From positions 124,001-188,000 of the forward strand of contig MCFE01000023.1 in assembly GCA_002104905.1 (NCBI GenBank): DNA of 64,000 nucleotides, in the 5' to 3' direction. Origin of the DNA: Basidiobolus meristosporus CBS 931.73. Lineage: Eukaryota; Fungi; Basidiobolomycota. A program made the translations under genes and the position numbers. Positions 1 through 20,752 of this stretch are shown piece by piece. Below the pieces are notes generated by a model. That model ran no database searches. It saw only the letters and a program-made list of their open reading frames with translations, and was not told the origin of the DNA. Numbering within the stretch: position 1 is the stretch's first letter; the number at the start of each line of letters is the position of its first letter.

Positions 1-1914
1 TTTCTTACGAGTGAAATTGGAGGTTTTCCCTGTTTCTTGTCGGATTCCTTGACGTTCCCTTGCCCCCCGAGCAGCATCTGTTTCAGGAGCCTGGGGTATC
101 TCCGTATACCCTGCCGTTGATCGAACATTTGCAAAACTCCATGATGTTCCTTGTCAGGGTACCAGTTTTATCAGAAAAGATGTACTCAATCTGACCCAAG
201 TCATCAGACAAGTTCCACTAAGAACAGGCATGAGTCTATGCTCCCCAAACACCTTCCCACTTGAAAACACTGACCGATTTCGGAACACACGAGGCTTTAG
301 TGGCTTCGTGATACATATTAAGATCGTTAAAAATAAAGAAGGCCTAGGAGCACAAAGAAAGGGTGAGCATCGATCTACAGAGAACAAAGAGTATTTTCAA
401 ATACTCACCTGCCAAGTCTTCACAAACTCCACACTGACGTAAAGCGAAATTGGAATGATATTTTGGAAGATAATCAAACTCGACCTAATAGGATGAGTCA
501 ATACCAAGACATGCAACTTCAGCTGCATAGAGGAACCTACCAGAAAGTTAGAAAAGCCAGTGTGAACGGCGAATCGGATGCCGAATCATTGATCGAGCTT
601 TGGCCTTTGCCTTCCATGATGCCATTGGCAATGGCGCAAAGCAAGCACAAAACCAACAGAATGATAAAGTTCATAATGACCTAGAGCAATAAGATTCAGA
701 AGCGAGGGTTAGAGGAATATTATTCGAGACTCCTTCAAACCATATCGTCTGGTTACCTGACGGTTCATGGCTTTCTCGATTTTACTTCTTTTTGAAGGAG
801 TAAGTCCCGAGTTCAGTAAGATCTTGGTGTCGCTACCAGTAAACACGGCGACTCCAATTACATAGCTGGTGTTCCGGATTACATGGCCTCTCAGTAGGGT
901 GTTACTAATATTGATTGGGACCGCGGAAGCCCGCTTCCTCGAGCCGCCCTGACTCTTATCGGACTCATCGTTGGAGTAAATGTGCATAGTAGCTTGATAT
1001 GCGTAGAGATTTGATGAGGGCATTTCTGAATCGATGTAGAATCTGGTATTGGCAAAGTCGGTTGGTGTTTTCAAATGCAAGGTCTCATCTATAGACAGCC
1101 TTGTCTTGAGGTTTGTTTCTCCGTCAAGCTCTTTCGTTTCGATAAAGCATTCGCCATCTGGCTCGCCAGAGGAAAGGATGACTAGATCAGCCGGACAAGT
1201 CTCATTGTTCTTTAAATAGACAATATCGCCCACCCGGATATCTTGCCACAATGCCTCTCGAAACTCGGTTGTGTCTGAATAAGACTCCTGGAATACCACA
1301 TCCTCGTTTCTGTTATTTTGCGTATCGTCGTCGATAAACCCAAACAACTTGTATTTGTATAGCGGGGCAGTGACTACATCCGATACGGAATACTGTATTC
1401 TCTGCCAAATCGTGGGTTGTTGGAGCGGGTGGTTAGTGTTTATCCAGTTCTGCAGGAGCTGTGTCTTGGAGCTATTGTAATTGAGGTCCGTCCTATGTCG
1501 CTTGTAATCTTCCACGCCATCCTTGATGGCGGTGATAGATATCACAGTTATCAACGGCATTATGGAAAAGATAGGGCTACTCACGCCTACGTAGGGCAAG
1601 AACTGCAGGATAGCCATAAATAGAAAGTACATGTTTGCTACGCGACGGAACTGCTCGAACAAATTCTTGGGTAAAAAATTAAATACGGTATATTTTGAGG
1701 TGCGAATGCGATTGCTTGGGAATTGCTTCTTGGGTAAACCATGTCTATTCAGCGCTCTAGGTGGTAGTTGGATATTTACATATATTTGGAGGGTTTCTCC
1801 ACTTCGGCGATGTCGAGAAGGGGAACGAAGTAAGGATTTCTCCACTCGCTTTCTCTTTGCCTTTTCACGTTGAGAGGGTAAAAACCTTCGACCACCGAAA
1901 TTTATCTTCCCCAT
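1..1914 (-). CDS. P4-type ATPase (phospholipid flippase, Dnf1/Drs2 family), 5' part; runs off the window start
   Basis: ORF 709-1926 has [32 protein letters not shown] and LLRG motifs. Spliced downstream exons give [14 protein letters not shown] and [23 protein letters not shown] (phosphorylation motif). Confidence 0.96.
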
Positions 1915-2020
1915 CGCAAGCTTCACGACTATCTGAGCGCGGGGTTTGGGTGTAAATGAGTATCAAAAAGCCGGAATAGAGAAGAAAGGCAATCAAAGGC
2001 TAAATCACACACAATTAGGC

Positions 2021-2105
2021 TTAGTATTGTTGATAGGCAGCGGGCTGTATTAGTATTGTTGATAGGCAGCGGGCTGTATTAGTATTGTTGATAGGCAGAG
2101 GGCTG
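2021..2105. repeat. 29-bp tandem repeat, about 2.9 copies (TAGTATTGTTGATAGGCAGCGGGCTGTAT)
   Basis: Units start at 2022, 2051 and 2080; read directly from the sequence. Confidence 0.95.
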
Positions 2106-2940
2106 AGAGCCATAAACAATCTTAAAATAATATTCTACAAAACTATATGGCTTGAATCAGACAATATGCTGGTGGGACTATATATATAGAGAAAGGGTCA
2201 ATGCCAGAAGTATTGTTCCCTTTTTCAGCGAATTCGAGGGAAATTGGAGAGTTTGAATGGATTTGGCATTCAAGGTTTTATCGAGTTTGACAAATAAGTC
2301 AAGGAGAGGGTTGATGGGTTTTGACGATTGGTGCTATGCTGGCAGATTGGAATGGAGGTTCATATTTGGGCAATATGACTGGACTAATTAATGTAGGACA
2401 GATTCATCGAAGATACTGCTAATGCTATATTGCCAAGATTTAAGCCTAATATTTGCCAAGTGATACTATTGTTTATGTCGAAAGCCTTGTAACCATATAT
2501 GGTGGAGTGTAATTGCAGGGTCACTCCACTCTCCTGTTTATCTCAATAGGGGATAGCCTTTCCATGCCAAGCCCATTGCTAAAGATCTGCCACTTACTGA
2601 GCAATCGCTCTTTCAGTGATACAACTACCATGGCTGAAAACCGAAGAATCCCATTAAACTCCGTATAATCCCGGCCCGACAGAAGATCAAATCTCTGCCG
2701 ATTCCATATACAGCACACTTGGTCTCCTCCATGACGCAATCCACTATAGTTTGTGCTATCCCTAGAGCTCAGATGTGATTTTCTTCACCAAAACTCGAAT
2801 GTTTTTTGCCGAGCGACGGCATTGACCAATTCCGTAGAAATGCGGATTGGTAGTACCATTGTTTACTGCTGATTCCTGCATGAATGGATGTGCACTCGAG
2901 ACTATTCTACTGCTATCTTTTAATGGTGAATGGCGATTGT

Positions 2941-5365
2941 TTACAGAATGATTACATCCGGATTCATGGTTTCATCCAGTTTATCCAAGTCTATTTCGAT
3001 TTTTCTTTTCCTCGCCTCCCTTGGCTTTGCAATCTTGGCATTTGCTGGCTCTTTGTTATTATCACAAGAGTCGTCTAGCTGGCTGATGTAGAATATGGGT
3101 TGGGCTGACTTTTCTGGCGAGGGGCTGTAGTGGGCTACAAATCCACGTGCTCTGGAGAGGTTCACGGTTAAATAGGAGATGGTAGAGTAGGCTGTGTAAT
3201 GCATCACTTCCTTTAAATAGCCGTCTAATAGCAATTTTATGGTGGTGTCCTCGATATTTTCTTTCGTCAGCGTATCTTGAGATTTGTTGGATCGAAGGGT
3301 TATTTTGGGAATATCGGCCCAGTTTCTGAGTGTAGGGTATTTGGTCATACCAACCCCGCGAACCAAATCCAGCATCTTCAGGAACGTGACCTTTTCTTCT
3401 GATAGTCCTTCTTCTTTCAGCTTCAGCAGGATCTTAACGATGGCTAGTGCGATAGTGGTAGCATCCTTTTGTTGGGGAATCTTGCCTGCTGACCTTCCGC
3501 TACATACATCACACCATTGATCGCATGCGTTGGCTGCGAGGGTGGAGTCGCCAAAGTGCTGTGCAATAGAGATATGTCTACAGGTGTCTATGTTTTGGCA
3601 GTATTCCACAAGCTTGTAAAGGTTTTTTTGTCCGGATTGTTCATGGAACACCATAGTCGATTGCCGAAATACGTCTTGAACTCGGTAAAGAAGTATGCAA
3701 CTTGCTGGCTCGCCATCTCTGCCGGCACGCCCGCTTTCTTGGTAGTAAGACTCCATCGATTTGGGGACGGAATGATGAATCACCTGTGTAAGCAATATGT
3801 ATCAGGCATGAAGTCACTCAGCTCTCCATAGTAATAGGACGATACTCTACAAAGCGCACGTGAGGATGAGATATTCCCAGTCCAAAGGCAATGGTGGCAA
3901 CGATCACTGTGATGACCATCGTTAGCAAACCAAAAAGTCAACTAGCCACACTAATATCAGCATACCTTGGATAGTCCCTTTCATCCACCTTGAATGGATT
4001 TTACTTCGATGGTCTTCGTCCATATCTGCGTGATAGGCAGCAGCCTTGATTCTCTGTTGAATCAGATCGGATGCCAATTCAGATGACTCCTTTTTCGAAA
4101 AGCAATATATAATGCCACATCCCCCATTAAATCGACCTATGGTTTGGCATATCATTTGGAATGCTTCGTTTTTCTCCGAAGGCTGGGTTGGAGGGAAGAG
4201 TATCAGTGTTTCTAATCGTGAATGCGATTTCTCCCACTTCACAAACCTTACGAAGCACCTCATAGTTTAGATTTGGTCGATCGACCGGTGAACGGAACAA
4301 GACACATTTGGAAGATAGTCCAAGTATGCTCTTGACATCTTGTATGATCGTAGAGGTTGCAGTCGCAGTGACTGCTATGATCGGTACCTTGGGCATTACT
4401 TTCCGTAATAGCCCCAACTTCGCATAGTCCGTTCTAAAGTCATGGCCATACACACTACAGCAATGCGCCTCATCAACCACTATTCTCAAAAGCAATCGAC
4501 GCTAATATTTGAATGAGAGGTGAACAATGGCATGATCAATATATCCATAGATCAATCTTACTTGGGCAAGCTTCTCCAGTTGATTAACAAACATTTTGCT
4601 TTTGGCGATTTTTTCCGGAGTAACATAACTAAAGGAAAAGTGTCTGTACTCAATAAATGGCCTTGAGCCTACCGATCTAGTGCTATGTACCCACAGGAAT
4701 TTCAAAGGTCTTCGAGTGCCCTCTTTTTCATCTTGAGCGCAGCTAAGCATGGCAGCCATGATTGCTTTCGCCTGATCTTTCGGCGTTTTCGCAGTAAGGC
4801 AGGTCGCATAGATTCCCAGAGTTTCGAGATGCATGATCTGATCATGAATTAAAGATAATAAAGGGCTTATGACCAAAGTCATTCCCTCTGATAGTAACCC
4901 AGGGATTTGATAGGTTAGCGATTTTCCTTAGTGATCGGGATAGTCAGATAGTCGCGGGCTTTAGTGAGGGATTTTGAAGGAGTGGTAGGTTTGTATATAA
5001 ATACCTCCACCAGTAGGCATGAGGACGAACACGTCGGCATTTGAGGTGGTGGCATTTATGATTCCCACCTGATTGAACCGAAAGGATTTTATATGGAAAA
5101 CATTATCTCGCACGTTGTTGGCCTTGGCTGACCAAGGGAAATCGGAGAACCATTTTTCCACCTCCTTTTCTCCCAGGTCAGCTTCCAAGCAGATTAGCTC
5201 ATTTTCACTATCTGATATTTCTAGAGTGGATATCTGACGTTGCAGTAAGGAAACCCGTTCGTTAAGTTCGTCTTTCCTTATTTGCAATATCTCCAGCTCT
5301 TGCTCTACACAAGACAACTCAATCTGGCACTGCTCCAACTCCGCATACAGACTCTGCTCAGCCAT
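2941..5365 (-). CDS. RECQL: RecQ family DNA helicase, RECQ1/RECQL type, multi-exon
   Basis: Spliced motifs [60 protein letters not shown]. Zn-binding CRH..HF..C..CDVC. Winged-helix hairpin [17 protein letters not shown] and N-terminal coiled coil resemble RECQ1. Confidence 0.92.
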
Positions 5366-5865
5366 GGCCGTAAACAATCGTCGGAAATCAGCGGTAAGCT
5401 GACCATCATGTCACTCTCCGTCAAATAAGCCAACAAGATACACGTGATCTTGATCGATGAATCTAACCTCAAGAGTGAAATTCAAGCTCATTAGTAAGAA
5501 GCCAAGTTGGAAGAGCATAAACTCGATCAGCATTTGCACCACAGATAGACATATTAGACCCAGAAGGTGCAGCTTGATACTAGTAGATTGGAAAAGGAGT
5601 TGATGCTGCCAGAGCACTCACTAATCAGTTCATTTATGCTTTGATATGTGACGATTGGACTGAATAAGGACCAGAGTCGTTAGACATATCAGGGATAATG
5701 CGATTGCAATATGGGGAAACGAAGCCCCCTCGATGACACATGGTTATGCAGATAAGGCATAGTGCGAAGTAGAATACAGATGAAAGGGGGGCCTAATCGT
5801 TTTGTAACATCTTATAAATATCGTGCTCGAAGCAATAGCCTTGCACTAGTTTCACTATACCCACC

Positions 5866-6558
5866 ATGCTATTGAAACTTCTACACATCACTTTCTCGGG
5901 GTTCATGCTGGCCCAGATGGTTGCTGGCCATATGGAAATGGTAGAGCCTGCCCCTCGAAGATCCTCACACAATGCATATTTCCAAAGAAAAGGCGACGTT
6001 GACTACGATATCATGGCACCACTCAGTAATAAGGTATGGGGCTCAGTTGTTTTATTTACGGCGTAGGTGATATTAAGTGACTTTATCCAGAGGCCGTTTC
6101 CCTGTCAAGGGGCACCCAAGGGGCCTAGTGTTGGGACCTATTCTGCTGGTTCGAGCATCAGGTTTAAAATAGCTGGAAGCACTCCGCATAAAGGCGGAAC
6201 ATGCCAATTTGTGATTTCATATGATAGCAGGACGTGGGTTGTCTTAAAAACAGTTCTTCGGGAATGTTTGAACTCTGGATTGAACTTTGATGTTCCACTG
6301 CCCACAAACGCACCCTCCGGCGCGGCCATAGTAGCCTGGACGTGGATCAGCAAAGAAGGAAATCGAGACTTTTACATGAACTGTGCTGATGTTACTATCA
6401 AAGGTAAAACTGGGGGATCCATCACTGGGCCCAGGTTGGCCATTGCTCAACTGCCAAGTTATCCAACAATCCCCGAATATCCAGAGCGTGGTTGGGACGA
6501 CGTTTCTATATTTGAGAAGAGACCCACCATCACTATTAACGGTAAAGGGGGCTGTTAA
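5866..6558 (+). CDS. Secreted AA11-like lytic polysaccharide monooxygenase, 2 exons (intron 6034-6090)
   Basis: Signal peptide ends AG|HMEMVEPAP (N-terminal His). Motifs FPC, PHKGGTCQF, AWTW..GNRDFYMNCADVTI match the AA11 pattern. Confidence 0.85.
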
Positions 6559-6875
6559 GGAATGGAGTGGACATTGACATTGGAGTTGGGAAAAACTCCA
6601 GGAACGAGAATCGTGAAGAGAACGACGAGGATGAAGAATAGGAATTCAACATCCGGACGACCTAGTCTTGGTAACGATTGGAGCAGGCTTCACTTATTTT
6701 AGTGCTAGATGAAATAAATCAATCTCCATATATAATTGAGCGACAGTTTCCATTATAATGATGTTTAATGTACACTACTTGATGTAGTGAAATTGATGAA
6801 ATGGTACAACTGATATCAAATCTAAATTATATTTACTCAAAGGTGATTTTGTTTACTTTCAAATGGACCGAGTAT

Positions 6876-8028
6876 TTAGGCCTTGCCAGTGCTTTTGGCA
6901 AGAGCCTTTTGCTTTTTGAGAGTGGCGGCTTGGGACTTGGCTCCCATGATACCACCACCCCAATGCTTACGGGCTTCCTCATATTTGTCGTTGTATGAGA
7001 CCTTGAGAGCATCCACCAACTTGGCAAGGTCGGCTTTATCAGCATCCTGAACATCGGTGATGGCAAGGGCAGTAGCGGTCTTCTTGTGAACAACGGTACC
7101 AAGACGAGCCTTACCCTTAACAATGCAGTAAGGAATTCCCATCTTACGGCAAAGGGCAGGCAACCAGAGAACAATTTCGATGGGGTCAACATCATCGGCA
7201 ATCACAACAAGTTGCGCCTTCTTAGATTCGACCAAGGCAGTAATATGGTTGATACCATACTTGACGAAGGTGGGCTTCTTGCTCTCGACCTTGGAGCCTT
7301 CAGCAGCAGCTTTGGCAGCTTCAGTAAGACGAGCCTTCTTGTCTTGCTTGGTTTCGGGGCGATACTTGTTCAAGAACTTGAAAAGTTCAGTGGCTAAATC
7401 GAAATTGAAAAGGGAGTGTCAATAACATACAACACAATAAATGGTATGGAGGTCATTGGTAGCCAGAAGTCCTATGACTGAACACCATCCGATTGTTCAC
7501 ACTCATCAAACAATCAGACAGTTTCAGCACCATCAGACTCCGACTCCTATCAGGATCATTGACAACCAAATGCATCTTTGAAGATCAGCTGTCGTCGCAA
7601 GAAGTGTAGAAAACACTACAAAGCATCGGACAAGATATTGAAGGATGACATCTAGACTGCCTACTTCGAATAAATTCGAATAACCATACCAGTGTTGCGG
7701 TCCAAAACCTTTGTGAATTGGTTAAGGGTGGGAGGAACCTTGAGACGAAGCTTGAGAACCTTTCTTTGGCGTTGAAGACGAACATACTCAGGCCACTTGA
7801 CAAAGCGAGATAAATCACGCTTGGGCTGAACGTCAGCTCCAATACCAAAGTTCTTGGGTGTCTTCTCAAACAAGGGGTTCTTCACAACCTTGCTGGATTG
7901 CTTTCCCTTGGAAGGATAAGGAGCAGGGGCGACTTTCTTGGAAGATTTCTTGGAGGGAGCCTACATGATATTTGTTGGGTCAACACGGGTGGTTGGATGG
8001 CATTAGCGGGTTGTTTAGAACTTACCAT
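6876..8028 (-). CDS. RPL8: 60S ribosomal protein eL8 (L7a/L8), 3 exons
   Basis: ATG|GTAAG first exon. [54 protein letters not shown] and HWGGGIMG. Confidence 0.98.
7466..7593 (-). ncRNA. Candidate structured intronic RNA (snoRNA-like) in the long RPL8 intron
   Basis: Intron is about 290 nt versus about 60 nt typical. Two hand-folded hairpins at 7561-7593 and 7466-7541. Identity not established. Confidence 0.3.
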
Positions 8029-8291
8029 TTGAATAACGCGCAAAGAACAGATAAGCGAGAAGGAGCGTTCCTTGGCACAGACCCCTTTTAAAGCGTCCTC
8101 TGAATTCTTTTTTTTATTCGGAACCATTTTTTTGCTGGTCATAATTCGGTTAACCCTAGATCCTCACGTACCACAGAAATTGCCGATACCAATTGCGATA
8201 CTCTTTTGAATCTTCAGAATTTATTGTAATTATAACCTTTAGCTACGAATAGCATGGCAGAGCTAGAACGTACACTCTATTAACCTAGAAC

Positions 8292-8736
8292 TTACTCGGG
8301 GAAAAATGTAAATTCTAAATAAACCTCCCCTGCAGGTACACCTCGGTCATTCAATTCAAACCATTCTGTTTCGAAACGTTAGTACGAACTTGGTGAACTA
8401 GAAAAGCGAATACTTACTGTCTAGTTGATAATAAGTAAGCGCAGGCCCAAAATCAATCTCTCCCTCGCCGATAAATGCATGCTCCCGTAAGTTTTGGTCA
8501 AAACATTTCACTATCACTCTATGCACTCCTTCAGTTACGTCAAAGGATAGACGCTCATTCCACGTAGGTTTTTGGCCCCCATTCCTATCCGCTTTGGTAC
8601 GCTGACGCTTGTTCCCTATCTCAATCTGGAGAAAGGGGTCCTGTTTTCCTATTTTTTGAACCACTTTCAAATCACGGCCTTTGCAGGGCCTAACCTCCAG
8701 CGTTCCCAAAGACTTTGCTTTTCTCCTGAAGACCAT
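8292..8736 (-). CDS. Small C2-domain protein, 2 exons
   Basis: GTLEVRPCKGRDL..GKQDPFLQIEIG..RTKADRNGGQKPTWNE.LSF..FD..FIGEGEI. Second exon WFELNDRGVPAGEVYLEFTFFPE*. Confidence 0.85.
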
Positions 8737-8917
8737 AACTGCTGTTTAGTAGAGGATTACGACGACGAAAAGGAAGGCTAGAGTAACGTGATTTATCATT
8801 AACTACGGTTAGTTAATCAATACACAGTAAAGAATGCTGTAGATATTGAAGTGTAAGATGCTTGCGAGGATTATAAAAAGCAACGCACGACTCTCAACAC
8901 AGAGGGGTGGAGCATTA

Positions 8918-9968
8918 TTATAATACATCCTGGGCCTGGTTAGAGCGGAATACTCTCCTAACCCACATAGCAGCTGCATCCATTCTCCATCTTGACAATG
9001 GATCACTTTCCCCCACATAGCCAATGAGATCACCGAGCATTACAAGGACATATGTCAAATTTATTGTGGCAGTAATGCATGACTGCAGGCGATAATTCAG
9101 GCGATATTGTTCATATAATGCTGTGCAATCTGCGAGGAAAAGGTGGAAATTTAGTGCACATGAATAATAGGTTTTACGAATATGGCCTACCTTTTCCAGC
9201 ACGGTAGCCTTCTCATGATTCTCTGTGGTTGGATGAAGCATTTCATCAAGGAGACGGATCTCCTTTTCCGCTCTTTTCAGATACGAGTCTACAGACCGAA
9301 AGGTTCCAGTCCAATCAGTTTTTGACAAGGTGCGTTCAGGCTCCGGCAATTCTGAACTGGTGGGAATTTCGCTCTCTGCAAAGCACATGCTTGACTTCTC
9401 GTGAGGAGGCCATCGTCTACAATAGTATGAAGCTGATTCACATACCTTGCTTTTCTCTTCTTGCTCGCCCCGGTGTTTTTTAATTGTTCCATATCGACTT
9501 GATAGAGAAGTGCATGGAGTTGAGCGCGTGGGTTGACAATGTGCTTCAGAGGCAGGCTTCCAAGCTCCAATTGATTTTTATTGAACGGACGAGAGCTTGG
9601 GGGAAATAGCAGGTTGATTAAGGCCATACAATTGGAAGAGGAGAACGGGGTCTTTTGCATCTCCAATAGCACCATCTATATGATACAACAGTTAAAATAG
9701 AGAAGAGTAGAAAATCTCTTCAATTTCCGGATACCACTTGTTTCAAGGAGGATATGCTCTTCTCGAATAGTATCTCTAAAGTAGTAGAGTCTTGTACTGA
9801 ATAGTTGCCCTTTTCTTCCTTATTATCAGCCAATTGCTGTTCCCGAAGTTTTCTGCGTGCTCGCTCAATCAACTGAATAAACTTGACTACTTCTAACATG
9901 TTCTCCCAATTACAGTCTTGTTGGTTTTCTGAAATATTGTCCCGGATGGTGAATAGTAAAAGTGACAA
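8918..9968 (-). CDS. Hypothetical helical protein, multi-exon; 5' end unresolved (may extend past 10.1 kb)
   Basis: Three protein-like ORF segments (9720-9968, 9289-9675, 8918-9388) separated by plausible GT-AG introns. No family recognised. Confidence 0.55.
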
Positions 9969-10539
9969 TGAGGGATTTCCAATATGTTTACTTCCATCGC
10001 AACACTCGACAAGCCCTATATGACAATTTGAGGATCGAGCCGGGTAAGAGTCTTCTCAAGATTATTTACCTTTTATTAATTTGAATGAAGGTAAATCTCC
10101 GGTTGCTCTTGTACAGTAATGCTCAACAATCCAGTCAAGAGGTGAAGCGATCGACATTTTCTGGCTCTCGTTACAAAAACGGGGCGTGTACTGTATGTTT
10201 ACATGTTTTGATATTAAATGGGATATTCCGGATCAGCCAATTAACAATAAAGGATGATTTCAACAGCTACGTTCATTGGAATGAATTGACATGAACACAC
10301 AGGAGCATATGGAGGAATTTTGTCGATTCAAAATTATTGAGTTTCGATTGATGACTGTGGTTTTGCTGGTGATGTAGAGTGAGCAGTCCCACAACCATTA
10401 AAGATGGCATTTTTTGCTTCTGACTTGTGTATTTTAACTGCCTCTGCATTGTTGGTGAAATATAAGCATGTTGACTAAAGACACCATACCCACGTAAACC
10501 ATTTTACGGGTAATTTTCGCGAGAAGCTTTCTCTATTCG

Positions 10540-10962
10540 TTAACCATAGCGTGCTGTCGGAGTTGGTAGAATGTAGCGCAATCGCAACTTCGGTATCATA
10601 AAATCGACCATTTGAATCACATTCATGATTGGTGTGAAAACGACCTGATGAATACGGTTTTTATCAACTACCGCGAATAAACCACCCACACACAAATGGT
10701 TCACAAGAAAAACCTCTTCGGATTCGACATAAACCGAATCTACCTGTATTACTCCGATAGGTCGCCCTTGGTTACCGGCAGTAAATAGCCATTTACGTTG
10801 TTTTTCCATACCAAACGAAACGAGATCCATCAGTGGGAATAGCCTACGCGGTGGGAAAACGAGAGCTATCATATTGTCGAATTCTAGTTCACGTTTCAAT
10901 CTAGATTTGGAACAGAAGCTCACGTATTTTGCCACTTTACGTAGCGCATATTCCAGAATCAA
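10540..10962 (-). CDS. Possible exon or ORF of unknown function (140 codons)
   Basis: Open frame with protein-like composition and no ATG at its start. Could belong to the 8.9-10 kb gene. Confidence 0.3.
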   Translation of the reverse strand: MILEYALRKVAKYVSFCSKSRLKRELEFDNMIALVFPPRRLFPLMDLVSFGMEKQRKWLFTAGNQGRPIGVIQVDSVYVESEEVFLVNHLCVGGLFAVVDKNRIHQVVFTPIMNVIQMVDFMIPKLRLRYILPTPTARYG

Positions 10963-11401
10963 GACGAAGTCAGCCGAAGTTTATTTCGTATTCCATTTTT
11001 GGATTTACTATCGATAAAGCTAGTGAAACTACAATACACAAACGGGTATAGCATTCGAAATTCGTAGGTGTTGAGGTCTTTCGAGATTCTACATCAAATG
11101 TGGATATCCACAGTCCCCACGAATTCCTAAGCCATTTTGTGACTCAGGTCGTACCTCTTAACTCTACATGAGCGATAGATATTATTTATATATGCCATAT
11201 CAACATGTGTCTGTATCACTTTTCGATTGTTCAGTATTCTTTTGGCTCTTTAGAGTGAAAGATTTAGCCGAAGATTATTCAAAAGATGACTTCCTTGTGC
11301 TCTAAGGTGCACCCAATTCACTTTTCGCTGTTGTCTGAGCCCCTTTTAATAGCGAACGTCCTATCTACTAGTTAGCAAGGCCGTTGTTTCGTGCTACAGC
11401 G

Positions 11402-13079
11402 ATGCGCCTACAGACGAGATCTTTTACCCACGCGACAAGTTGGCAAGCAGCGGGAAATACAACCGGAGCAGAGGAAAAAATCCAGCCCTATGACATGGTA
11501 AACACCTGCTAATTCTTGTTACTTCCCATTTGCTTTGCTCAAAAACGCTTCCAGGAACCTCAAACCAAAGCACTGTTCGATAATCTTATTACGGGGGATC
11601 GTCGTTCTCTAGCCAAAGCAATCACCTTAGGTTGTCTCGATTTTTAGAATGGCTCAAAAGCATCTGAAGCTAAATAAGTAGACAATGTTTAGTTGAATCC
11701 TCCAAAGAAGCCCACAAAAAGCAGGCACATCAACTACTAGCGAACGTAATGCTCCACAATAGCCAAATGAAAGACTCTAAAAGAACCTTTCGGATTGGCT
11801 TGAGTGGGCCGCCTGGAACTGGTAAATCGACTTTTATTGAAGCGTTCGGGATGTATTTACTTGATAAAGGAATGAAAGTCTCCGTTCTGGTAAGCTTTAC
11901 TTTGGATACCACATTTTGCGTTTGCCTTACCAGTTTACCCACAGGCGGTTGATCCTTCATCCACACGCACCGGTGGCTCAATATTAGGGGATAAAACAAG
12001 AATGGAGCAACTTTCTATCCAGAATAATGCTTACATCCGACCCACCCCCTCTAGAGGCTCATTAGGTAACCGTAAATCCCAGAGTCGGTATGGTTTAGAG
12101 AAGTATTGAAATCATGTCTGCAGGCGGAGTTGCTAGAAACACCAATGACGCTATTGTATTGTGCGAAGGTACAAGCTATACGTATTCTAATATATGAAGC
12201 ATATACTAAATGTTGATGAACACTCACAGCGAATGGATACGACATATGCTTAGTTGAAACGGTCGGGGTTGGCCAATCCGAGACCATGGTGGCCAATATG
12301 GTGGACATGTAAGCTTCTTTCGAGTTATTTGGCTGCGAATCCTCAAGTTAATCCAACTTTACAGGTTCGTGTTGTTGGTTCCTCCTGGAGGTAGGCACTT
12401 GTGGCAGTATCATAGCCGCACAGGTACTAAATCGTGATGACAAATAGGCGGGGATGAGCTTCAGGGAATGAAGCGAGGTATTATTGAGCTATCAGATCTC
12501 ATCATTGTTAACAAAGCAGATGGGGAGTTGAAGAATGCGGCCAAGTATGCTCAACTAGAATATAAGCGTGGCTTGGCATTTATTCAACCTTCGAGCCCCA
12601 ACTGGATGCCTAAGGTATGTATTGAGCACATTTCTGTGTGATCAATCAACTAACTTGGATCCATATTGATTAGACCACTCTTGTCTCTTCCCGAGAGAAG
12701 ACTGGCTTGGACAAAGCTTGGAAGTACATGACTGATTTCAAGAAGGCCATGGAGGTATGCATTATCTACGCGCGTTCGGGTATCTCACTCATTGACTCAA
12801 CTTTGGGCAGGATTCTGGTGAATTTGATCAAAAACGGGCTCAGCAACGTAAGAAATGGATGTGGAAAGAGGTCACCGAGTCCTTACTCCACCAGTAAGTA
12901 CATCGTTGTTTGGACTATATTGTGTAGGAAACTAACGCATCTTGGCCAGTCTTCATACAAACACCGAGGTGCAAGATTTGATAAAGGGAATAGAGGGTCA
13001 AGTGATCTCAGGACAATTGGCTTCAGGACAGGCAGCTGACAAAGTGCTAGAATGCTTTATGAAGAATGCGAAATTTTGA
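11402..13079 (+). CDS. MMAA: MMAA/MeaB/ArgK GTPase (methylmalonyl-CoA mutase B12 chaperone), many short exons
   Basis: Spliced motifs [89 protein letters not shown]-terminus resembles a mitochondrial presequence. Confidence 0.96.
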
Positions 13080-13380
13080 GTTTCCTTCAGCATTCCTCTA
13101 GTAAATAATATGTTGAGGCCATCCTCATCACCAATCTCTAATTGATTGGCTTTTTCTTGCATACTCTGACCTCACAATTAAACTGTCTATAGGTTTGTTT
13201 TCATTAAATGCACAAAATAAATCCCTCAATACGGCATTTTCCACACTCAACAAGTGTCAATCATTGGTTGAAGAATCAGAGATGCGCAGTGTTGATAAAT
13301 GCCCTGTTGTTGCGCAGTACTAGTACTAATACTAAAGCAACCGCCATTTGTGCCTGACTTCTTCTTTTGTTCTTTGAAGT

Positions 13381-15443
13381 ATGACTTCTAGACCAGGAAC
13401 CAATCGCACCTTAGCTAGCAGATCCTCTACCTCCCGCTTTGCCAACTCTGGGAACAAACCTTGGCAAAGGAGCGGCACCATAGGTGGTCAGGTAGCTCCC
13501 GAAGATGCCTCAAAGGTCTTTGAAAAAGTTACACAACAGGCTCGGGCTTCTGGTATGAACCCTTATGTTGTATTCTGTGTATGTTTGGATTATTGTTGAC
13601 TTTTGTTCAGGAATATTGAACCTGGCCGGGCGCTTCTTGGACCATATTCCTGACGAAGTATGGAATATGTACAATGTCGATCCCAAAAAAGTGGACTTGG
13701 ACTTCAATAATAGCGATAGGTGGTGGGAATCCGTTGAGTTAACCAAGTTTTTTGCAAACGATAATCTACTGAAAGAGCTTGACGCCAGAATTGGTCACTT
13801 CGAGGCGTTGACTGTGCTTGATGTAAGTATATGAGTATGCCGTTTGCTGTAGAGTGCCTCATCTAATATGTGCATATAAAAATCCCCATCAGCTACACAA
13901 CAACCAACTCAAGGAATTGCCAAACGAAATGAGCCAATTGAATCGTCTTTGTTTGCTCAACTTGGCTGGAAACGAACTTGAAGCCTTGCCCGAGTTTATA
14001 TTCGACCTCCCACTCGTTGAACTGCATCTACAGCGAAACAAGCTATCTAGCTCATTAGATGGCCTTGAAAGGCTCTCTAAACTGTCTATCCTAGACCTCT
14101 CGGATAATAGTATTGACAGCATTCCCGAGAATATTGGTCAACTCAAGTCATTGCGTAAACTTAACTTGACAAAAAACAAGTTGACCTCGTTGCCTACTAG
14201 TCTTAGCGATATAACATCTCTTTCGGAGCTTGAGGTGAAAGAAAATAGCCTCACTCAGATCTTCAACAAACCAGCAACCCTCTCAAAGTTGCTACGCTTG
14301 GACCTCTCTCGTAATAAGTTGACAGGCTTCATTGATGAACTGAACTTCCCTATACTGAAGGAACTTCTTTGTGCCGGAAATAATATCAAGTCACTCGGAA
14401 ATCTTCTTGTTGGTACTCCTGCATTACATATCTTGGATCTTCAGAACAACAGTCTAGATAGCTTCCCACCCAATCTCTTTGAGCTCAAGGAAATCAAAGT
14501 GCTTGATTTTCGTAACAACTACCTATCACAGCTGCCTTTAGAGCTATGTCACCTTACAACTCTTCAAACTGTATATTATGATGGAAACCCTCTGAAGAAC
14601 TTCCCTAGAGCGAAAAGCACCGCGGATCTTTTGCATACTCTGGAGATTCGACTTCTTGCTCAAGAACGGGCGCAGAACAAAACAGAAAAGAAGGATACGG
14701 TAGAAACTGCGCCCAGCAACGAATCACGACCAAAGGCCCTCAATGAAAAGCAAGTGATTGATAGAAATATTGAAACGCAAACCGCACCAAAGGCCAGTCC
14801 GACCCATAACACCCTTGTGTCTCGCCTTACTACACAACAGATTTCGGCACGTACGCTTGATCTCACGAAGAACTCCCTCACCAACCTTGAAGAATCGTCT
14901 ATAGCTGATCTGACATTTTCGCCCATTCACATCAAGTTGGACTTCAATGCTCTAACTACGGTTCCAACTGTTATCTTCAATTATTTCGAGACACTCACTA
15001 CTTTAACATTAACCCATAACAAAATTACGGAATTTCCTATTCCGTCACACACGCTACCTGCTCTTCGATCCTTGGATCTCTCACACAACCTCATCACATC
15101 AATTCCGTTAGAAACCGAGGCATTCCCTGCTCTGGCTGAGCTTTATCTGAACTTTAACCGAATCGCCGGTACGTTCCCGGCTAAACTCCCATTTCCCAAC
15201 CTCTCAATCCTTGAGGTGTCATCCAATAAGCTAGATGCATTTCAACCTGATGCTTTCCATGGGTTGGTCCAATTGGATCTATCGAACAACAATATAGCCA
15301 GAGTTCCGCCAGAACTTGGATTAATTGATACCATCACTAGATTACAATTGGAAGGGAATGTATTCCGCGTTCCTAGATATGAACTACTTCAAAAGGGTAC
15401 ACAGGAAATCATGTCATACCTCAAGTCGCGAGTAGCCAAATGA
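13381..15443 (+). CDS. LRRC40: Leucine-rich repeat protein, LRRC40-like, 3 exons
   Basis: QARASG|ILNLAGR..IPDEVW..D.WWESVELTKF N-terminus. Two LRR blocks. C-terminal cap L.GNVFRVPRYELLQKGT.EIMSYLKSR. Confidence 0.8.
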
Positions 15444-15786
15444 TGCAATATTCTAGCCTAACAAATACCATTAACCTCTAATCAAGTTGCCTTCACCATG
15501 AACCAACTCTGCTATTGCAAATTAACCACTATTCAACATAATCTATTCTGAAGAGAATAAAATCCAACAGAGATTCGATTAACCTGTTTGCTCTGGTAGC
15601 TCTGCACACAACTTTTATAGAATGGAGTATACCGGAACCATCCAAACACTTCATGGAAGGCAACAAATCATTCCCGAATTCCTGAACATGCCTTAACCAT
15701 TGAGAAAAAGAAAAAAATCCTTGGAGATTTATCATATACCACCTCTCCGGTTTCGACCAAACCTTTGCAGCAACAATCTACTCCCC

Positions 15787-16506
15787 ATGCCCAAAGTACG
15801 CAGAAACAGAACCCGTCTTCACACTCAAGCAGCAGCAACACCACATATCTCCGAGCGTGCATTTGCTGCTCAAGATAACCAGGTGCAAAAGCTAGCCGAT
15901 GCGTCAGAGGTCAGTTTAGAGACAAATCCTGACCCAACCTCACCGCCAACCATTCGAGCTAACTTTTGTGTATTCGTGTTTGGGGGATTTTAGAGCGATG
16001 GTCCCGGGGCTTTGAATAGTTCCAAAAAAGACAAAAGAAAGCAACGCCACGACAACTGGCTTTCAAGTAAGAGGAATGCTATGTCGAGGGAGACGACGGA
16101 TGGTGATTGATTTAATGCTTGGCTTCTAGAGCTTCACACAGCACACCAGGAGATGAGAAAGAGCAAAAAGAAGGACACCAGCTTGAACATGACCATGTTC
16201 AATGAAGCGCTACCCAAGGTCGAGGCGAACAAGAAAGGACAAGAACAGAAGCCAACCTCTCAAGAGAAGCTGGGCAAAAAACGGGTTGCTACCAAGAAAG
16301 GAAGAAAAAACACAGCGTGAGTTCGAGCATCCATCGATTCCTGTGGTTGGGGACCGTACTAAAGCTTGATTTCTAGTCTGCAAGAAATTGTTCGATTCCA
16401 AAACATCCTAAAGCATCCCGATTTTCAACAAAACCCGCTTCAAACCATCCAACAGCATGTGGCTAATACGGTTGAAACTCGTACCACCAATGAAGAGCAG
16501 TCTTGA
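15787..16506 (+). CDS. SLX9: Ribosome biogenesis protein Slx9/FAM207-like, 4 exons
   Basis: MPKVRRNRTRLH, KKDKRKQRHDNWL, and C-terminal LQEIVRFQNILKHPDFQQNPLQTIQQHVANT. Introns splice in frame. Confidence 0.85.
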
Positions 16507-16951
16507 TCCGATTCGACTAATCCCAGCGCACTCGTGCATGTGTCTCCACTATCCGTTCTCCATTATCCATTATCCATTATCCATCATCCCTTTCCCAATC
16601 CTCGCCCCATAGATTAGCTGAGTGTGCTGGAAATAAATCATCAGTAATGTACAAAACACCCAAATTAATTTGATTTAATCCTCAACAGAGTAGCATTTAC
16701 TGTATGATCGATTTGATTGAATATACAGGTGCTGATCTTGCCTACCAATCATGGGGATTCCCTGTTGAAAGGTTCCCCTGTGTAATTGAAGAGTGGTTGG
16801 ATTTAAAGCTCACATGACGAATCGTTTAAAACGCTTCAAGGCGTCCTCGATGAGATCAATTTAATCGACTGATTACCACTTCGTACATTAACCGAAACAC
16901 ATCACTCTAGCATTCTTCCTCAATCATAGGTTGTTCGCGTTTTGGCCAAGA

Positions 16952-19025
16952 ATGGAAGCTCCTAACACACCAGACTCGAAAGGAACAGTGGACCGTACAC
17001 TTATCGCGCCCAAGAGCAAACGGAGAAGTGATGTGTGGGACCATTTCTATTTGGCAAGAGAGGGGAGATACCAGTGTCGTTACTGCACGAACACCTTCTC
17101 CAAATTAACTGCTACCACGCCGCTGAGATATCATTTGAGGTCACAGCACGCGTCCGTGCTTGGGGATAGGTTCAAGGCAAGCGCCAACCACCCAGGCTCT
17201 CTTTCCCCGAGCCTGTTGAGCCAATACCCTCCAATAAATAGTCTGAATCCCGCACTGTTGCCAGGACGTAACTCCGCCTCTTTACCGCAGCAGCTTCAGC
17301 ATCCCCAACTAAATACCACCTCCGCACAGCTTGGCCAGAGCACCAATTTTCTGCCGAACTCGCCCCAAAGCGTGGAGACCCTAAAAAACGAGCTTCTCCA
17401 AACGAATCCGCCTCTCAAGGAGTACGGGGCTCTGCCGAAAGATTGGCAGGATTCCTTGCTAGACTGGTTGATCAGCGACCTTCAACCCTTCGAGGTTGTG
17501 GAGCGTCCGTCGTTTGTCAACTTCATTGGCAAGATTTGCCAAAGCTGCGTTCTTCCGGACCCGGAGAAACTTGAGCAACTGGCCTTCCATCGATTCCAGA
17601 AGGAGAAGGGGCAGTTCAAGACGAAAATTACACGAGGAGGCATCCAAGGTTGCATTATCGGTAGATTTGTGGACCTCCAGTGACCTAAGAACGTACCTGG
17701 CTCTCTCCATCCAGTATATCGACAACGAATGGGACGTGAAGTCCTACTTCTTGGACGTCAAGGATTACGATGCGAGTAGTGATGGGAACCAGATCGCCGC
17801 CATAGTCTACAACGTACTCATTGACTACAACCTTGCAGGAAAGGTGATTGCGATCACTTCAGATAACGCACCCAACCTGATGGCCGGTAAGTGAGATCGA
17901 TGCAGCCAGTATTTCTGCTCCATGCCACGAGCTAAACGAACCCGTTTTACAGGAATGCCCGTTCTAACCTCGATACTCCAAGAGAAGATGGTGGAGCTCA
18001 AGTTCTACCCATGCTCCACCAAGATCCTGAACCTTGTGGTGCAAGAGGGCTTGAAGAACGAAAATGCGGTCGTCAGCAAAGTTCGGACGGTCATTACATA
18101 CATCAAGAACTCTCCCGAGATCTACTCGCAGTTGATGGAGTTGCAAAGGAATGCCTCCAGGCCTCAACAGCCGCTGGAGCTCGACAACCCGGTCCAATGG
18201 AACTCCACATTCACCATGTTGAAAGGCTTCCTGAGTCACCAGGATGTGATCCAAACCATCCTCAAGCAAAACGCCGACCTGAAAGACCACATGAATGTCA
18301 GTGACTGGGAGCGGATCAAGCAGTACACAGCTCTTCTCCAGCCATTCAACCAGGCAGCTGAGATCCTGACCACCCCGTGCCAATGCACCCTGGGCAAGGT
18401 ATACACGATCTTCCATGGGCTGGCGTCAATTCTACGGGACGTTCCATCCAAGCTTCCCTTGGTTTCGGTGGACACCATCAACTCGATGCTTCAGACTCTC
18501 CTTGAGTATTGGAGTTGGAACGACTTCAGCTCTCTGCAGTTCATCCCGGTCGTACTGGACCCCCGAGTCAAGTTGGAGTACTTCTCGGACGATGTCAACA
18601 TCGAACACGTGAAGGAATGCCTGGTGTCGATCATCGAGATCTACAGCCTGTCGGGGATTGGACCGGCGCACCCATCCTCGAAGCACGAACCAGAGACCAA
18701 TTCTCTGAATCTCAACAATTACATTGCTCGGCCGTTGAAACGTGGCCGGATCTATTCGGACTCGAACGAGCTAGGGATGTACTTTGCCAGCCCGGTGGTT
18801 CCACCCGATTCCAACGCACTGGAGTGGTGGAAGACCAACCAAGCCTCCTACCCGATACTCTCCAAAATCGCCCGGGATTTCCTGAGCATCTCCGCCATGG
18901 TGCCGCAGCCCGACCAGATTTTCAGCCCCTCCGGCGAGAATTACTCGAGAATCCTGGCGAGGCTGGACCAATCAGAGGTTGCCCGGTCCGCACTGTGTTT
19001 GAGCTCGTGGACACGCTCCATATAA
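16952..19025 (+). mobile_element. hAT-superfamily transposase-derived gene (zf-BED, RNaseH-like core, hAT dimerisation domain); one intron (17887-17952), one apparent +1 frame break near 17624-17627
   Basis: BED finger VWDHF..CRYC..HLRSQH. Core motifs DLQPFEVVERPSF, SVDLWTS, ITSDNA, WNST, LDPRVKL, LEWWKTNQASYPILSKIARDFL. No TIR or TSD found by eye. Confidence 0.9.
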
Positions 19026-19201
19026 TGGATTGTTTATAGACTTCATGACTTCATGGATCCACATTATTGTACAGGGGATGGATTTTCATTTTATCAATTT
19101 AGATTCTAACCAAATAAACGCTGTTAATTTACAAGGTTGCTGCCGCTATTACCACCACCACCACTAATACTACTGACGCACTATAGATGCTACGTGGACG
19201 G

Positions 19202-20752
19202 TCAATACTGGTCCTCTATCACTTTTCTAAGAAGGTTCACCATTGCCTGGTACGTTCCGATACAGCAGCAGAGCACGCCCACGAGAACGATGACCCCAGA
19301 CCAGGCGAGTTTCGCGGAGCTTGCATTCCTCAAACCGAAGAGTTTCAGATTGAAGAGCACAGGTAAGACAAAGATCAGCATGGAGTTGGAGATCGCCCCC
19401 AGGAGCGTCATCACATCCGAGAAGAAATGCAGTTTGATGGCGATCACTGCGGCGGAGGCGAGAAGCGCAGTACGGAACAAGGCGCGGTAGAGTAGCTCTC
19501 TTGCTGGCGACAGATACGCGATGTCGATCTTGAGCCTGGTTTCCGCCTCGAGTGACAGCGAGGCGAGAAGGATCGGGTTGGTCAGGAGTACGTGTGCGGT
19601 GATCACTGCCACCGCAAGAGTCAAATACGCTCCGGGCGGCAGGTTAAGTAATATGGGGGATTGGGTCCGTTGTCCATATACGTAGTAGCCAACAATGGCG
19701 GTAGCAATATACATCCCGGCGACGGTGATTATGGAGTAGCCATAGACCTTTGGCCAGGCTTTGCGATCCTTCATGCTATGCTCGACATGTGGGAAAACGC
19801 AGTTCCCGCCAAACGAAAAGCCAATCGCGGCGAGTACGGAGGGGAATGCTCCGATGTTGGCGAAGGTATGGGTGGTCGATAGATTGTTGGGCAGATCAAT
19901 AATCCCAAGGACAATGATCACCACCACCATGATCACAGTAGAGAAGGCACCGAAGAAGCTGAGAACTGCCACCTCCTTCAATGTCTTCATAAACACAAAG
20001 AATGGCCAGGTAAGCATGGCGCACACAACGACCCTAGTTTGAGAACACGTTGGGTGAATGCGGCAAGAATGGGGCATAAGGGTGGGCTCTTACCAAGTGG
20101 CTTCGTTCCAGCTCGGAAGGAAAGAGTTGCAAAGCACCTTGAGATTTTCCGCCGCCAATATCAGAAAAAGAGCCGAGGACCCGAACAGGATTGTCCACGT
20201 AAAGAAGATCACTACGTTCTTCCCGATGGTGCCAAATGCGGCTTCGCCAATCTCGGATAAGTCGCTCAAGCGAACGCTACACAATAGGAGATGTTGGGAC
20301 TGTGTTCGCACGGGATTATCATAGAGTGCGGCGCATACCTATCCACATAGAGGCACTTGATCAAGATATTTCCGGTATAGTAGACAATCACGGCACAGAG
20401 CAAAATGCTGAATACGCCGATCCAGCCTCCTTCCTGAAGACAAAGTGGAAGCTGAAGGATACCTGTTCCGGCCATGATACAACTGCAGGGAGTAAGTAAG
20501 GTGCCGAGAAGTGCTGTATATTCCATGTATGGAGTAGCTTACACCAAGTTGAAATATGCCCCGACATTCGAGCCGTGGCTCCCTTCATCAAACAGCTCGT
20601 GCTCGGAAATGGTCGATTTCCTTGTTGCTTCCAAGGAAAAGCCAGTTAGCTTACGTGATAGCATCGAGTTGGTACTTCGAATACTTACTGCTGATTGGAA
20701 CCACGCTATGGTAGGATATCGGCGGGGTTGCGTTTATCGGGGTTTGGTCCAT
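19202..20752 (-). CDS. Amino-acid transporter, AAAP/Aa_trans family (Avt1-like), 4 exons
   Basis: AYFNLV|CIMAGTGILQLP, FSFGGNCVFPHVEHSMK, GYYVYG, PFF-like FFSDVMTLLGA. Multiple transmembrane segments. Confidence 0.93.

Follow-up and report, generated by a model that had tools for sequence, protein, structure and literature searches.

What becomes of a transposase gene once it stands, in a single copy, among the ordinary genes of its host: does it serve the host as a gene in its own right, does it persist as an enzyme in some altered form, or does it decay? The question is raised by a gene derived from a hAT transposase in the fungus Basidiobolus meristosporus CBS 931.73, which we have analysed within a stretch of 64,000 nucleotides (contig MCFE01000023.1, positions 124,001 to 188,000; hereafter the window, whose coordinates are used throughout). 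The gene lies on the plus strand, with its ATG at 16952 and its stop codon at 19023-19025 in the open reading frame (ORF) list and the raw sequence, and is flanked on one side by the last exon of SLX9 (16366-16506; PF15341) and on the other by a convergent, minus-strand Aa_trans gene (19202-20526) for an amino-acid transporter. In our view the host has likely domesticated the transposase gene of a hAT (Ac/Hermes-type) element and kept it as a single-copy gene after the element lost its ends and its mobility. What argues for this is a syntenic ortholog in a second species, a shared intron position, constraint set against saturated neutral sites, a complete fold of the Hermes kind, and a non-coding block ahead of the gene that has been conserved. 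We have found no publication on this gene in the literature.

Orthology, synteny and constraint

The ortholog is a Basidiobolus ranarum protein of 666 aa (KAK9729678.1, here P0005, labelled 'hypothetical protein') that is encoded by an intact ORF. The reading frame of the window gene is broken once, as discussed below; the gene was searched piece by piece (coding pieces A, B and C; Table 1), and the B. ranarum protein was used as a stand-in for the full-length product. When each ORF of the 22-kb B. ranarum locus (L001) was compared with the window by tblastn, the two loci proved to have in common the gene order LRR-SLX9-(this gene)-Aa_trans(-)-Usp-EMC3-AAA ATPase, seven genes whose shared order and orientation span about 10 kb to 26.6 kb of the window. 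The synteny with SLX9 and the transporter that a first-pass annotation of the window had proposed as a check is thus found in B. ranarum. The B. ranarum gene also has a single intron, of 94 nt (GTATGT...TAG), at the same phase-1 codon position as the canonical 66-nt intron that had been reported in the window and that we confirm; the two intron sequences are themselves essentially unalignable. Because both the synteny and the intron position are the same, the two loci can reasonably be read only as the outcome of a single ancestral insertion; that the B. ranarum copy arrived recently by horizontal transfer, or inserted independently, is hard to reconcile with the flanks and the intron that both species have.

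In the comparison of the two species, for which the pieces were computed separately and then summed, 82 amino-acid differences fall in 665 codons (87.7% identity), and the nonsynonymous divergence (dN) is 0.067. Neutral sites, by contrast, are saturated: third positions are 43% identical, the 231 four-fold sites 32%, the intron 56% over aligned bases with many gaps, and the 3' flank 46%. The NG86 proportion of synonymous differences (pS) is 0.88, which reflects saturation together with a shift in GC content at third codon positions (GC3); the synonymous divergence (dS) is not computable and lies above roughly 1.5, so that the dN/dS ratio (omega) is roughly 0.05 or lower, a figure to be read as an upper bound given the saturation. 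The dN values of neighbouring genes are 0.046-0.10 (EMC3), 0.06-0.14 (MeaB), 0.07-0.17 (SLX9), 0.06-0.12 (LRR), 0.06-0.10 (Aa_trans) and 0.15-0.28 (AAA), by which measure the transposase-derived gene is at least as constrained as its housekeeping neighbours. Such a low dN against saturated neutral sites, with constraint like that of housekeeping genes, rules out a neutrally decaying relic.

That the locus should be a decaying transposon relic, or else a still-mobile autonomous hAT element, is scarcely credible. The frameshift in this copy could be taken in that sense, as could the hAT homology that runs throughout the gene and its poverty in introns, with one intron in 2 kb whereas most neighbours (MeaB, SLX9, Aa_trans, EMC3, Usp and AAA) are divided into many exons of 40-100 codons; the single intron fits the transposon origin of the gene. 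However, the gene sits at this locus in both species, between which synonymous sites have reached saturation, the two proteins are still 88% identical, and both the intron position and the 5' non-coding block are conserved. The hallmarks of an element are missing as well. Inverted pairs between the 5' and 3' flanks, sought in both species by a matrix search with shuffled controls, showed no clear excess (in the window, 10 pairs of 12-mers observed versus 6.7 shuffled, and 82 pairs of 10-mers versus 77), and no candidate pair in either species had a target-site duplication (TSD) matching at 7 or more of 8 positions, which bears out the earlier statement that terminal inverted repeats (TIRs) and an 8-bp TSD are lacking. 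A weak pair, TCCCCTGTGTAA at 16774 and TTGTACAGGGGA at 19067-19078, was rejected, being in the wrong orientation for element ends and having no TSD. Neither the 64-kb window, whether compared as protein or as DNA, nor the 22-kb B. ranarum locus yielded a second copy, and the protein collections contained no paralog of more than 33% identity.

The gene appears, from these sequence comparisons, to be lineage-specific and restricted to the genus, within the known class of ZBED, SLEEPER and Kat1-type domestications. In an exhaustive search of 1.84 billion representatives with exon 2 as the query, the next relative after the B. ranarum protein was only 33% identical; a word search with exon 2 gave only relatives of 23-27% identity within its length range, and one with the B. 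ranarum protein gave no further close protein of 366-1165 aa. The distant relatives are plant SLEEPER-like proteins, insect and fish ZBED-like proteins, and Paraglomus proteins. The first-pass annotation had proposed a domesticated, lineage-specific gene, and a syntenic intact ortholog, strong purifying selection and the want of any relative above 33% identity all point the same way.

The upstream block, which lies directly 5' of the ATG, is far better conserved than the background, for which the figures are 56-59% (with many gaps) in the intron and the distal spacer and 46% in the 3' flank. It holds exact runs of 22 nt, AGATCAATTTAATCGACTGATT and ACATTAACCGAAACACATCACT, as well as an upstream ATG (16814), from which the first seven codons read MTNRLKR in both species; neither the block nor the interval 16400-19400 matched any Rfam family. 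We think that the block is probably the promoter and 5' untranslated region, which fits a regulated host gene.

We note several features of the surrounding region. The hAT-derived gene (GC3 of 0.70) and the long Aa_trans exons (0.68) form a GC3 island at 17000-20300 of the window, where neighbouring genes have values of 0.39-0.60 and the B. ranarum orthologs of the two genes have values of 0.39-0.40. The island explains the bump in the composition profile (GC of 0.52 at 18-20 kb); biased gene conversion, or a codon bias linked to expression, might have produced the island. The neighbouring transporter is represented in B. ranarum by two close copies (P0179 and P0180, 85% and 83% identical to that of the window) on different contigs, and the transporter region may have been duplicated in that species; the best match of the window transporter exon among B. 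meristosporus CBS 931.73 proteins in a word search was 59% identical. Lastly, a type III glutamine synthetase gene (GSIII_N, Gln-synt_C; a bacterial-type family) adjoins MeaB in B. ranarum (L001:405-2720) and has no counterpart in the window, which points to a lineage-specific gain or loss.

Catalytic positions and fold

The BED finger, which the first-pass annotation had read as intact (CRYC...HLRSQH), is so: its zinc ligands follow the pattern C-x2-C...H-x4-H, the C, C, H and H columns are kept in homologs, and dN is 0.035 over the N-terminus and finger (the first 72 alignment columns). The same annotation held that the transposase had been 'rebuilt' as a BED-finger regulator; the finger was instead inherited from the transposase. 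The low-complexity linker that it described after the finger is present too, and the equivalent stretch of the ortholog model (residues 75-137) has a predicted local distance difference test (pLDDT) score below 50 and is predicted to be disordered.

Catalytic positions were placed by a phmmer alignment to Hermes (E=9e-13) and by column counts in an alignment of 88 distant homologs (A1). The aspartates equivalent to Hermes D180 and D248 are both kept, in the motifs VDLWTS and TSDNA that had been pointed out before (D in 73 of 84 and 78 of 87 homologs, respectively), as is the tryptophan equivalent to W319, which is invariant among homologs. The position of H268, in the CxxH motif, is occupied by K in both species (CSTK; H in 72/88 homologs), and that of R318 by Q in both (QWNST for RWNST; R in 72/88 homologs), just as these motifs had been read earlier. 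At the position of E572 the B. ranarum protein has E where the window gene has D (E in 75/86 and D in 6/86 homologs). The motif does read PDQIFS, as first reported, but the third catalytic glutamate has not simply been lost; the change is a conservative one, from E to D, that is confined to one lineage, since the ortholog keeps E. Lost chemistry is indicated more strongly by the block around it, as a rule the best conserved of all: where the family has the consensus (T/S)SVx(S/C)ERxFS, the window has MVPQPDQIFS and B. ranarum MVPPPEQLFN. A stretch of 16 residues at this E-motif accounts for 10 of the 39 differences found in pieces B and C (Fisher p=5e-8).

It is known that mutations of H268 severely impair catalysis by Hermes and that a CxxH double mutant of Kat1, a domesticated hAT protein of Kluyveromyces lactis, nicks DNA but forms no hairpins (PMC4763223). 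Because H268 is replaced by K and R318 by Q, and because the E-motif is fast-evolving in both species, cut-and-paste transposition chemistry has probably been lost. A still-active nuclease of the Kat1 type, with a D-D-E/D site that nicks or cuts fossil transposon-end sites, seems to us very unlikely. Such a protein might be a nickase or recombinase acting, for example, on the gene's own 150-bp upstream block, and it is the case that both aspartates and an acidic third residue have been kept after long divergence, that W319 is invariant, and that the conserved 150-bp block could be a target site. Yet the replacements at H268 and R318 are common to both species, the E-motif is drifting, and inverted-repeat remnants in the flanks are not above chance.

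The AlphaFold model of the ortholog, built on an 89-sequence alignment, has a mean pLDDT of 81 and a predicted template-modelling (pTM) score of 0.73, with residues 1-19, 75-137 (the linker) and 547-577 disordered. The top 11 Foldseek matches of this model are all Hermes, with E values down to 4e-20 and target TM scores of 0.71-0.73 (4d1q, 6dww), and the predicted fold is, as in Hermes, an RNase-H-like core interrupted by an all-alpha insertion domain. A structure model of the active site had been suggested in the first-pass annotation; judged by this model, the whole transposase body appears to be preserved, beyond the BED and dimerisation ends. Piece B alone matched nothing in PDB or Pfam, being too short, and its residues were placed via the full-length ortholog.

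Table 1. Features of the hAT-derived gene and its upstream region in window coordinates
Feature	Position	Strand	Remarks
Conserved non-coding block	16796..16951	+	Directly 5' of ATG; 84% identity over aligned bases with L001:9841-10000; counterpart block at L001:9837-10000
Coding piece A	16952..17629	+	Frame 2, 226 codons; KSKRR basic patch, BED finger, disordered linker, start of transposase N-terminal domain; 80% identical to P0005 residues 1-224
BED zinc finger, residues 26-66	17027..17149	+	Pfam PF02892, E=4.4e-10
S/P/Q/N-rich low-complexity linker	17165..17401	+	dN 0.21; 26/78 residues differ from B. ranarum; fast-evolving
Frameshift site	17624..17631	+	AAAATTAC in window, AAAAATAC in B. 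ranarum; frame 2 to frame 0
Coding piece B	17631..17886	+	Frame 0; RNase-H core strands with catalytic Asp 1 and 2; 94% identical to ortholog, dN 0.026
First catalytic D codon (VDLWTS)	17664..17666	+	Aligned to Hermes D180
Second catalytic D codon (TSDNA)	17862..17864	+	Aligned to Hermes D248
Phase-1 intron, 66 nt	17887..17952	+	GTAAGT...CTAAC branch site...CAG; in-frame stop inside
Exon 2 (piece C)	17953..19025	+	CSTK, all-alpha insertion domain with QWNST, third catalytic position, C-terminal domain, stop; 90-91% identical to ortholog, dN 0.051
CxxH-equivalent CSTK	18012..18023	+	
Q codon of QWNST	18195..18197	+	
hAT C-terminal dimerisation region	18768..19010	+	LEWWK...YPILSKIARDFLSI; Pfam PF05699, E=4.8e-14; aligned to Hermes residues 523-603, chain 8edg_A
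Degenerate E-motif helix	18897..18950	+	MVPQPDQIFSPSGENYSR; third catalytic position D at 18912-18914 (PDQIFS), E in B. ranarum

The break in the reading frame

Several findings weigh against domestication and must be set beside the evidence given above. The ORF is broken, running in frame 2 to 17629 and in frame 0 from 17631, and the gene as assembled cannot encode a full-length protein; the first-pass annotation overlooked this frameshift of 1 nt. Word searches of the annotated B. meristosporus CBS 931.73 proteome gave no ortholog of 196-1165 aa. Furthermore, the comparison is one of two species, in which selection is not assignable to one branch, and the persistence of both catalytic aspartates and an acidic third residue leaves room for a residual nuclease activity (nicking).

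A DNA alignment places one extra T at about 17628-17629 (GACGAAAATTACACGAGGAGG in the window, GACAAAAATACTCGAGGAGG in B. ranarum), within an A4T2 run. The residues K-T-K-I-L-E-E of B. ranarum match K-T-K-I and H-E-E of the window on the two sides of the frame change, and frame 2 continues past the break to a stop codon at 17681-17683. An intron that might bridge the two frames was sought among 62 GT..AG candidates of length 3n+1 that contain no stop; canonical donors were found in 0 of the 62, and each of the candidates would excise conserved coding sequence, for example that of the PFxxVE motif or of the catalytic Asp that comes first. With no plausible intron bridge, the break is a one-base frameshift; across about 12 kb of window coding sequence that could be aligned with the B. 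ranarum locus, the frame changes nowhere else.

The sequence downstream of the break is informative. When the 39 differences in pieces B and C were polarised against the 88 distant homologs, the window lineage showed 3 derived changes at conserved columns and the B. ranarum lineage 4, and the residue commoner among the outgroups was the window's at 21 sites and that of B. ranarum at 16. No second lesion was found downstream of the frameshift. The downstream sequence is thus as constrained in the window as in the intact ortholog, which suggests that the break, if real at all, is very young. PacBio sequencing was used for the CBS 931.73 genome (PMC7466969), and on balance we lean towards a consensus error of the long-read assembly as the source of the extra base. 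Two metagenome scans gave no matches, one made with the frameshift site and the other with a 30-nt sequence on which the two species agree exactly.

That the gene was domesticated in the genus and that the frameshift is real is a possibility that we take seriously without favouring it. The break might then reflect very recent pseudogenisation, or a reduction of the product to a 243-aa protein of BED finger plus linker that ends at the frame 2 stop. The extra base is, after all, present in the given sequence and rescued by no intron, errors are, to judge by the rest of the aligned coding sequence, not visibly frequent in this part of the assembly, and no gene model for the locus was found in the protein collection by word searches or by exact look-ups of seven window ORFs. 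Nevertheless, past the shift neither a further lesion nor a surplus of derived changes is seen, pieces B and C have dN values as low as or below those upstream, and the extra base falls within an A4T2 run.

A further possibility is that ribosomes pass the break by programmed +1 slippage, a +1 slip on A-AAA-A (17624-17627), which is also what the very unlikely Kat1-type nuclease would call for, the slip throttling its dosage in the species of the window. Kat1 provides a precedent, as a fungal domesticated hAT gene that was once annotated as a pseudogene and requires a programmed frameshift (PMC4763223), and a +1 slip on AAAA would give FKTK-LHEE, equal in length to FKTKILEE of B. ranarum. However, the feature is not conserved, B. 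ranarum being without the frameshift, and ATT, the 0-frame codon in the A site, is not a stop codon and not obviously a rare one. We regard programmed slippage as quite improbable; were the nuclease reading true, the gene would be a second, independent case of a fungal domesticated hAT enzyme regulated by frameshifting. We also note that one-base frame breaks in this assembly ought to be compared with the reads before a pseudogene is called.

Mode of action and known systems

If the gene is indeed domesticated, its history and function might be pictured as follows. A hAT element would have inserted between SLX9 and the amino-acid transporter gene before the lineage of the window and that of B. 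ranarum split, and would then have lost its ends and its mobility while the host kept the transposase gene, in a single copy, as one of its own. Delivery of the protein to the nucleus and to particular DNA sites could be the task of the basic patch at the N-terminus and of the BED finger, oligomerisation and a scaffold could come from the hAT C-terminal domain together with the transposase body that has been kept, and the disordered, S/P/Q/N-rich linker may serve as an interaction or activation region. The domain architecture, read as it is for ZBED and SLEEPER proteins, suggests that the product most likely acts as a nuclear, oligomeric DNA-binding factor that binds through its BED finger and carries a disordered effector linker. 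The gene would also show how parts of a transposase can stay constrained after catalysis has been lost, which here would mean the whole fold except the helix of the E-motif. Two orthologs in a clear syntenic setting make it a tractable system in which to study the function of BED-hAT proteins in fungi.

The vertebrate ZBED genes (ZBED1/DREF-like, ZBED4 and ZBED6) resemble this gene in combining a BED finger, an RNase-H-like body and a hAT dimerisation domain, and the B. ranarum ortholog has precomputed matches to the Pfam families PF27041 and PF27039 (ZBED1_RNase-like). Like them, the gene is apparently single-copy, is syntenic, lacks TIRs and is under purifying selection. It differs in having a single BED finger, an S/P/Q/N-rich linker of about 65 aa and both catalytic aspartates, and its identity to ZBED proteins is just 22-25%, which argues for an independent domestication in a zoopagomycete fungus. 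The SLEEPER genes of angiosperms (DAYSLEEPER, RICESLEEPER) are likewise host genes with BED and hAT-dimerisation domains that derive from Ac-like transposases, and among named relatives from other genera a RICESLEEPER-2-like protein (33% identity) scores best. They belong, however, to another kingdom, are not orthologous and were domesticated independently, and the resemblance may reflect only common Ac-like ancestry.

The autonomous hAT transposases Hermes and Ac share with this protein the Hermes-like fold, the residues D180, D248 and W319, and the C-terminal dimerisation motif. Unlike those elements, the gene is apparently single-copy and has no TIR or 8-bp TSD; H268 is replaced by K and R318 by Q, SER reads PDQ in the window and PEQ in B. 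ranarum, and the helix that carries this motif is fast-evolving.

Kat1, which acts in mating-type switching in K. lactis, is like this gene a fungal, syntenic, domesticated hAT gene with a BED finger, and it is read in two overlapping frames through a -1 programmed frameshift (PMC4763223). Kat1 keeps CxxH and is catalytically active, whereas the gene described here has CxxK, and the shift here is +1 and is not found in the sister species. Domesticated hAT transposases have rarely been described in fungi, Kat1 being the only such example in the literature that we found. To it the Basidiobolus gene would add an independent, genus-restricted case, in an early-diverging fungus with a transposon-rich genome and unusual BED-finger fusions.

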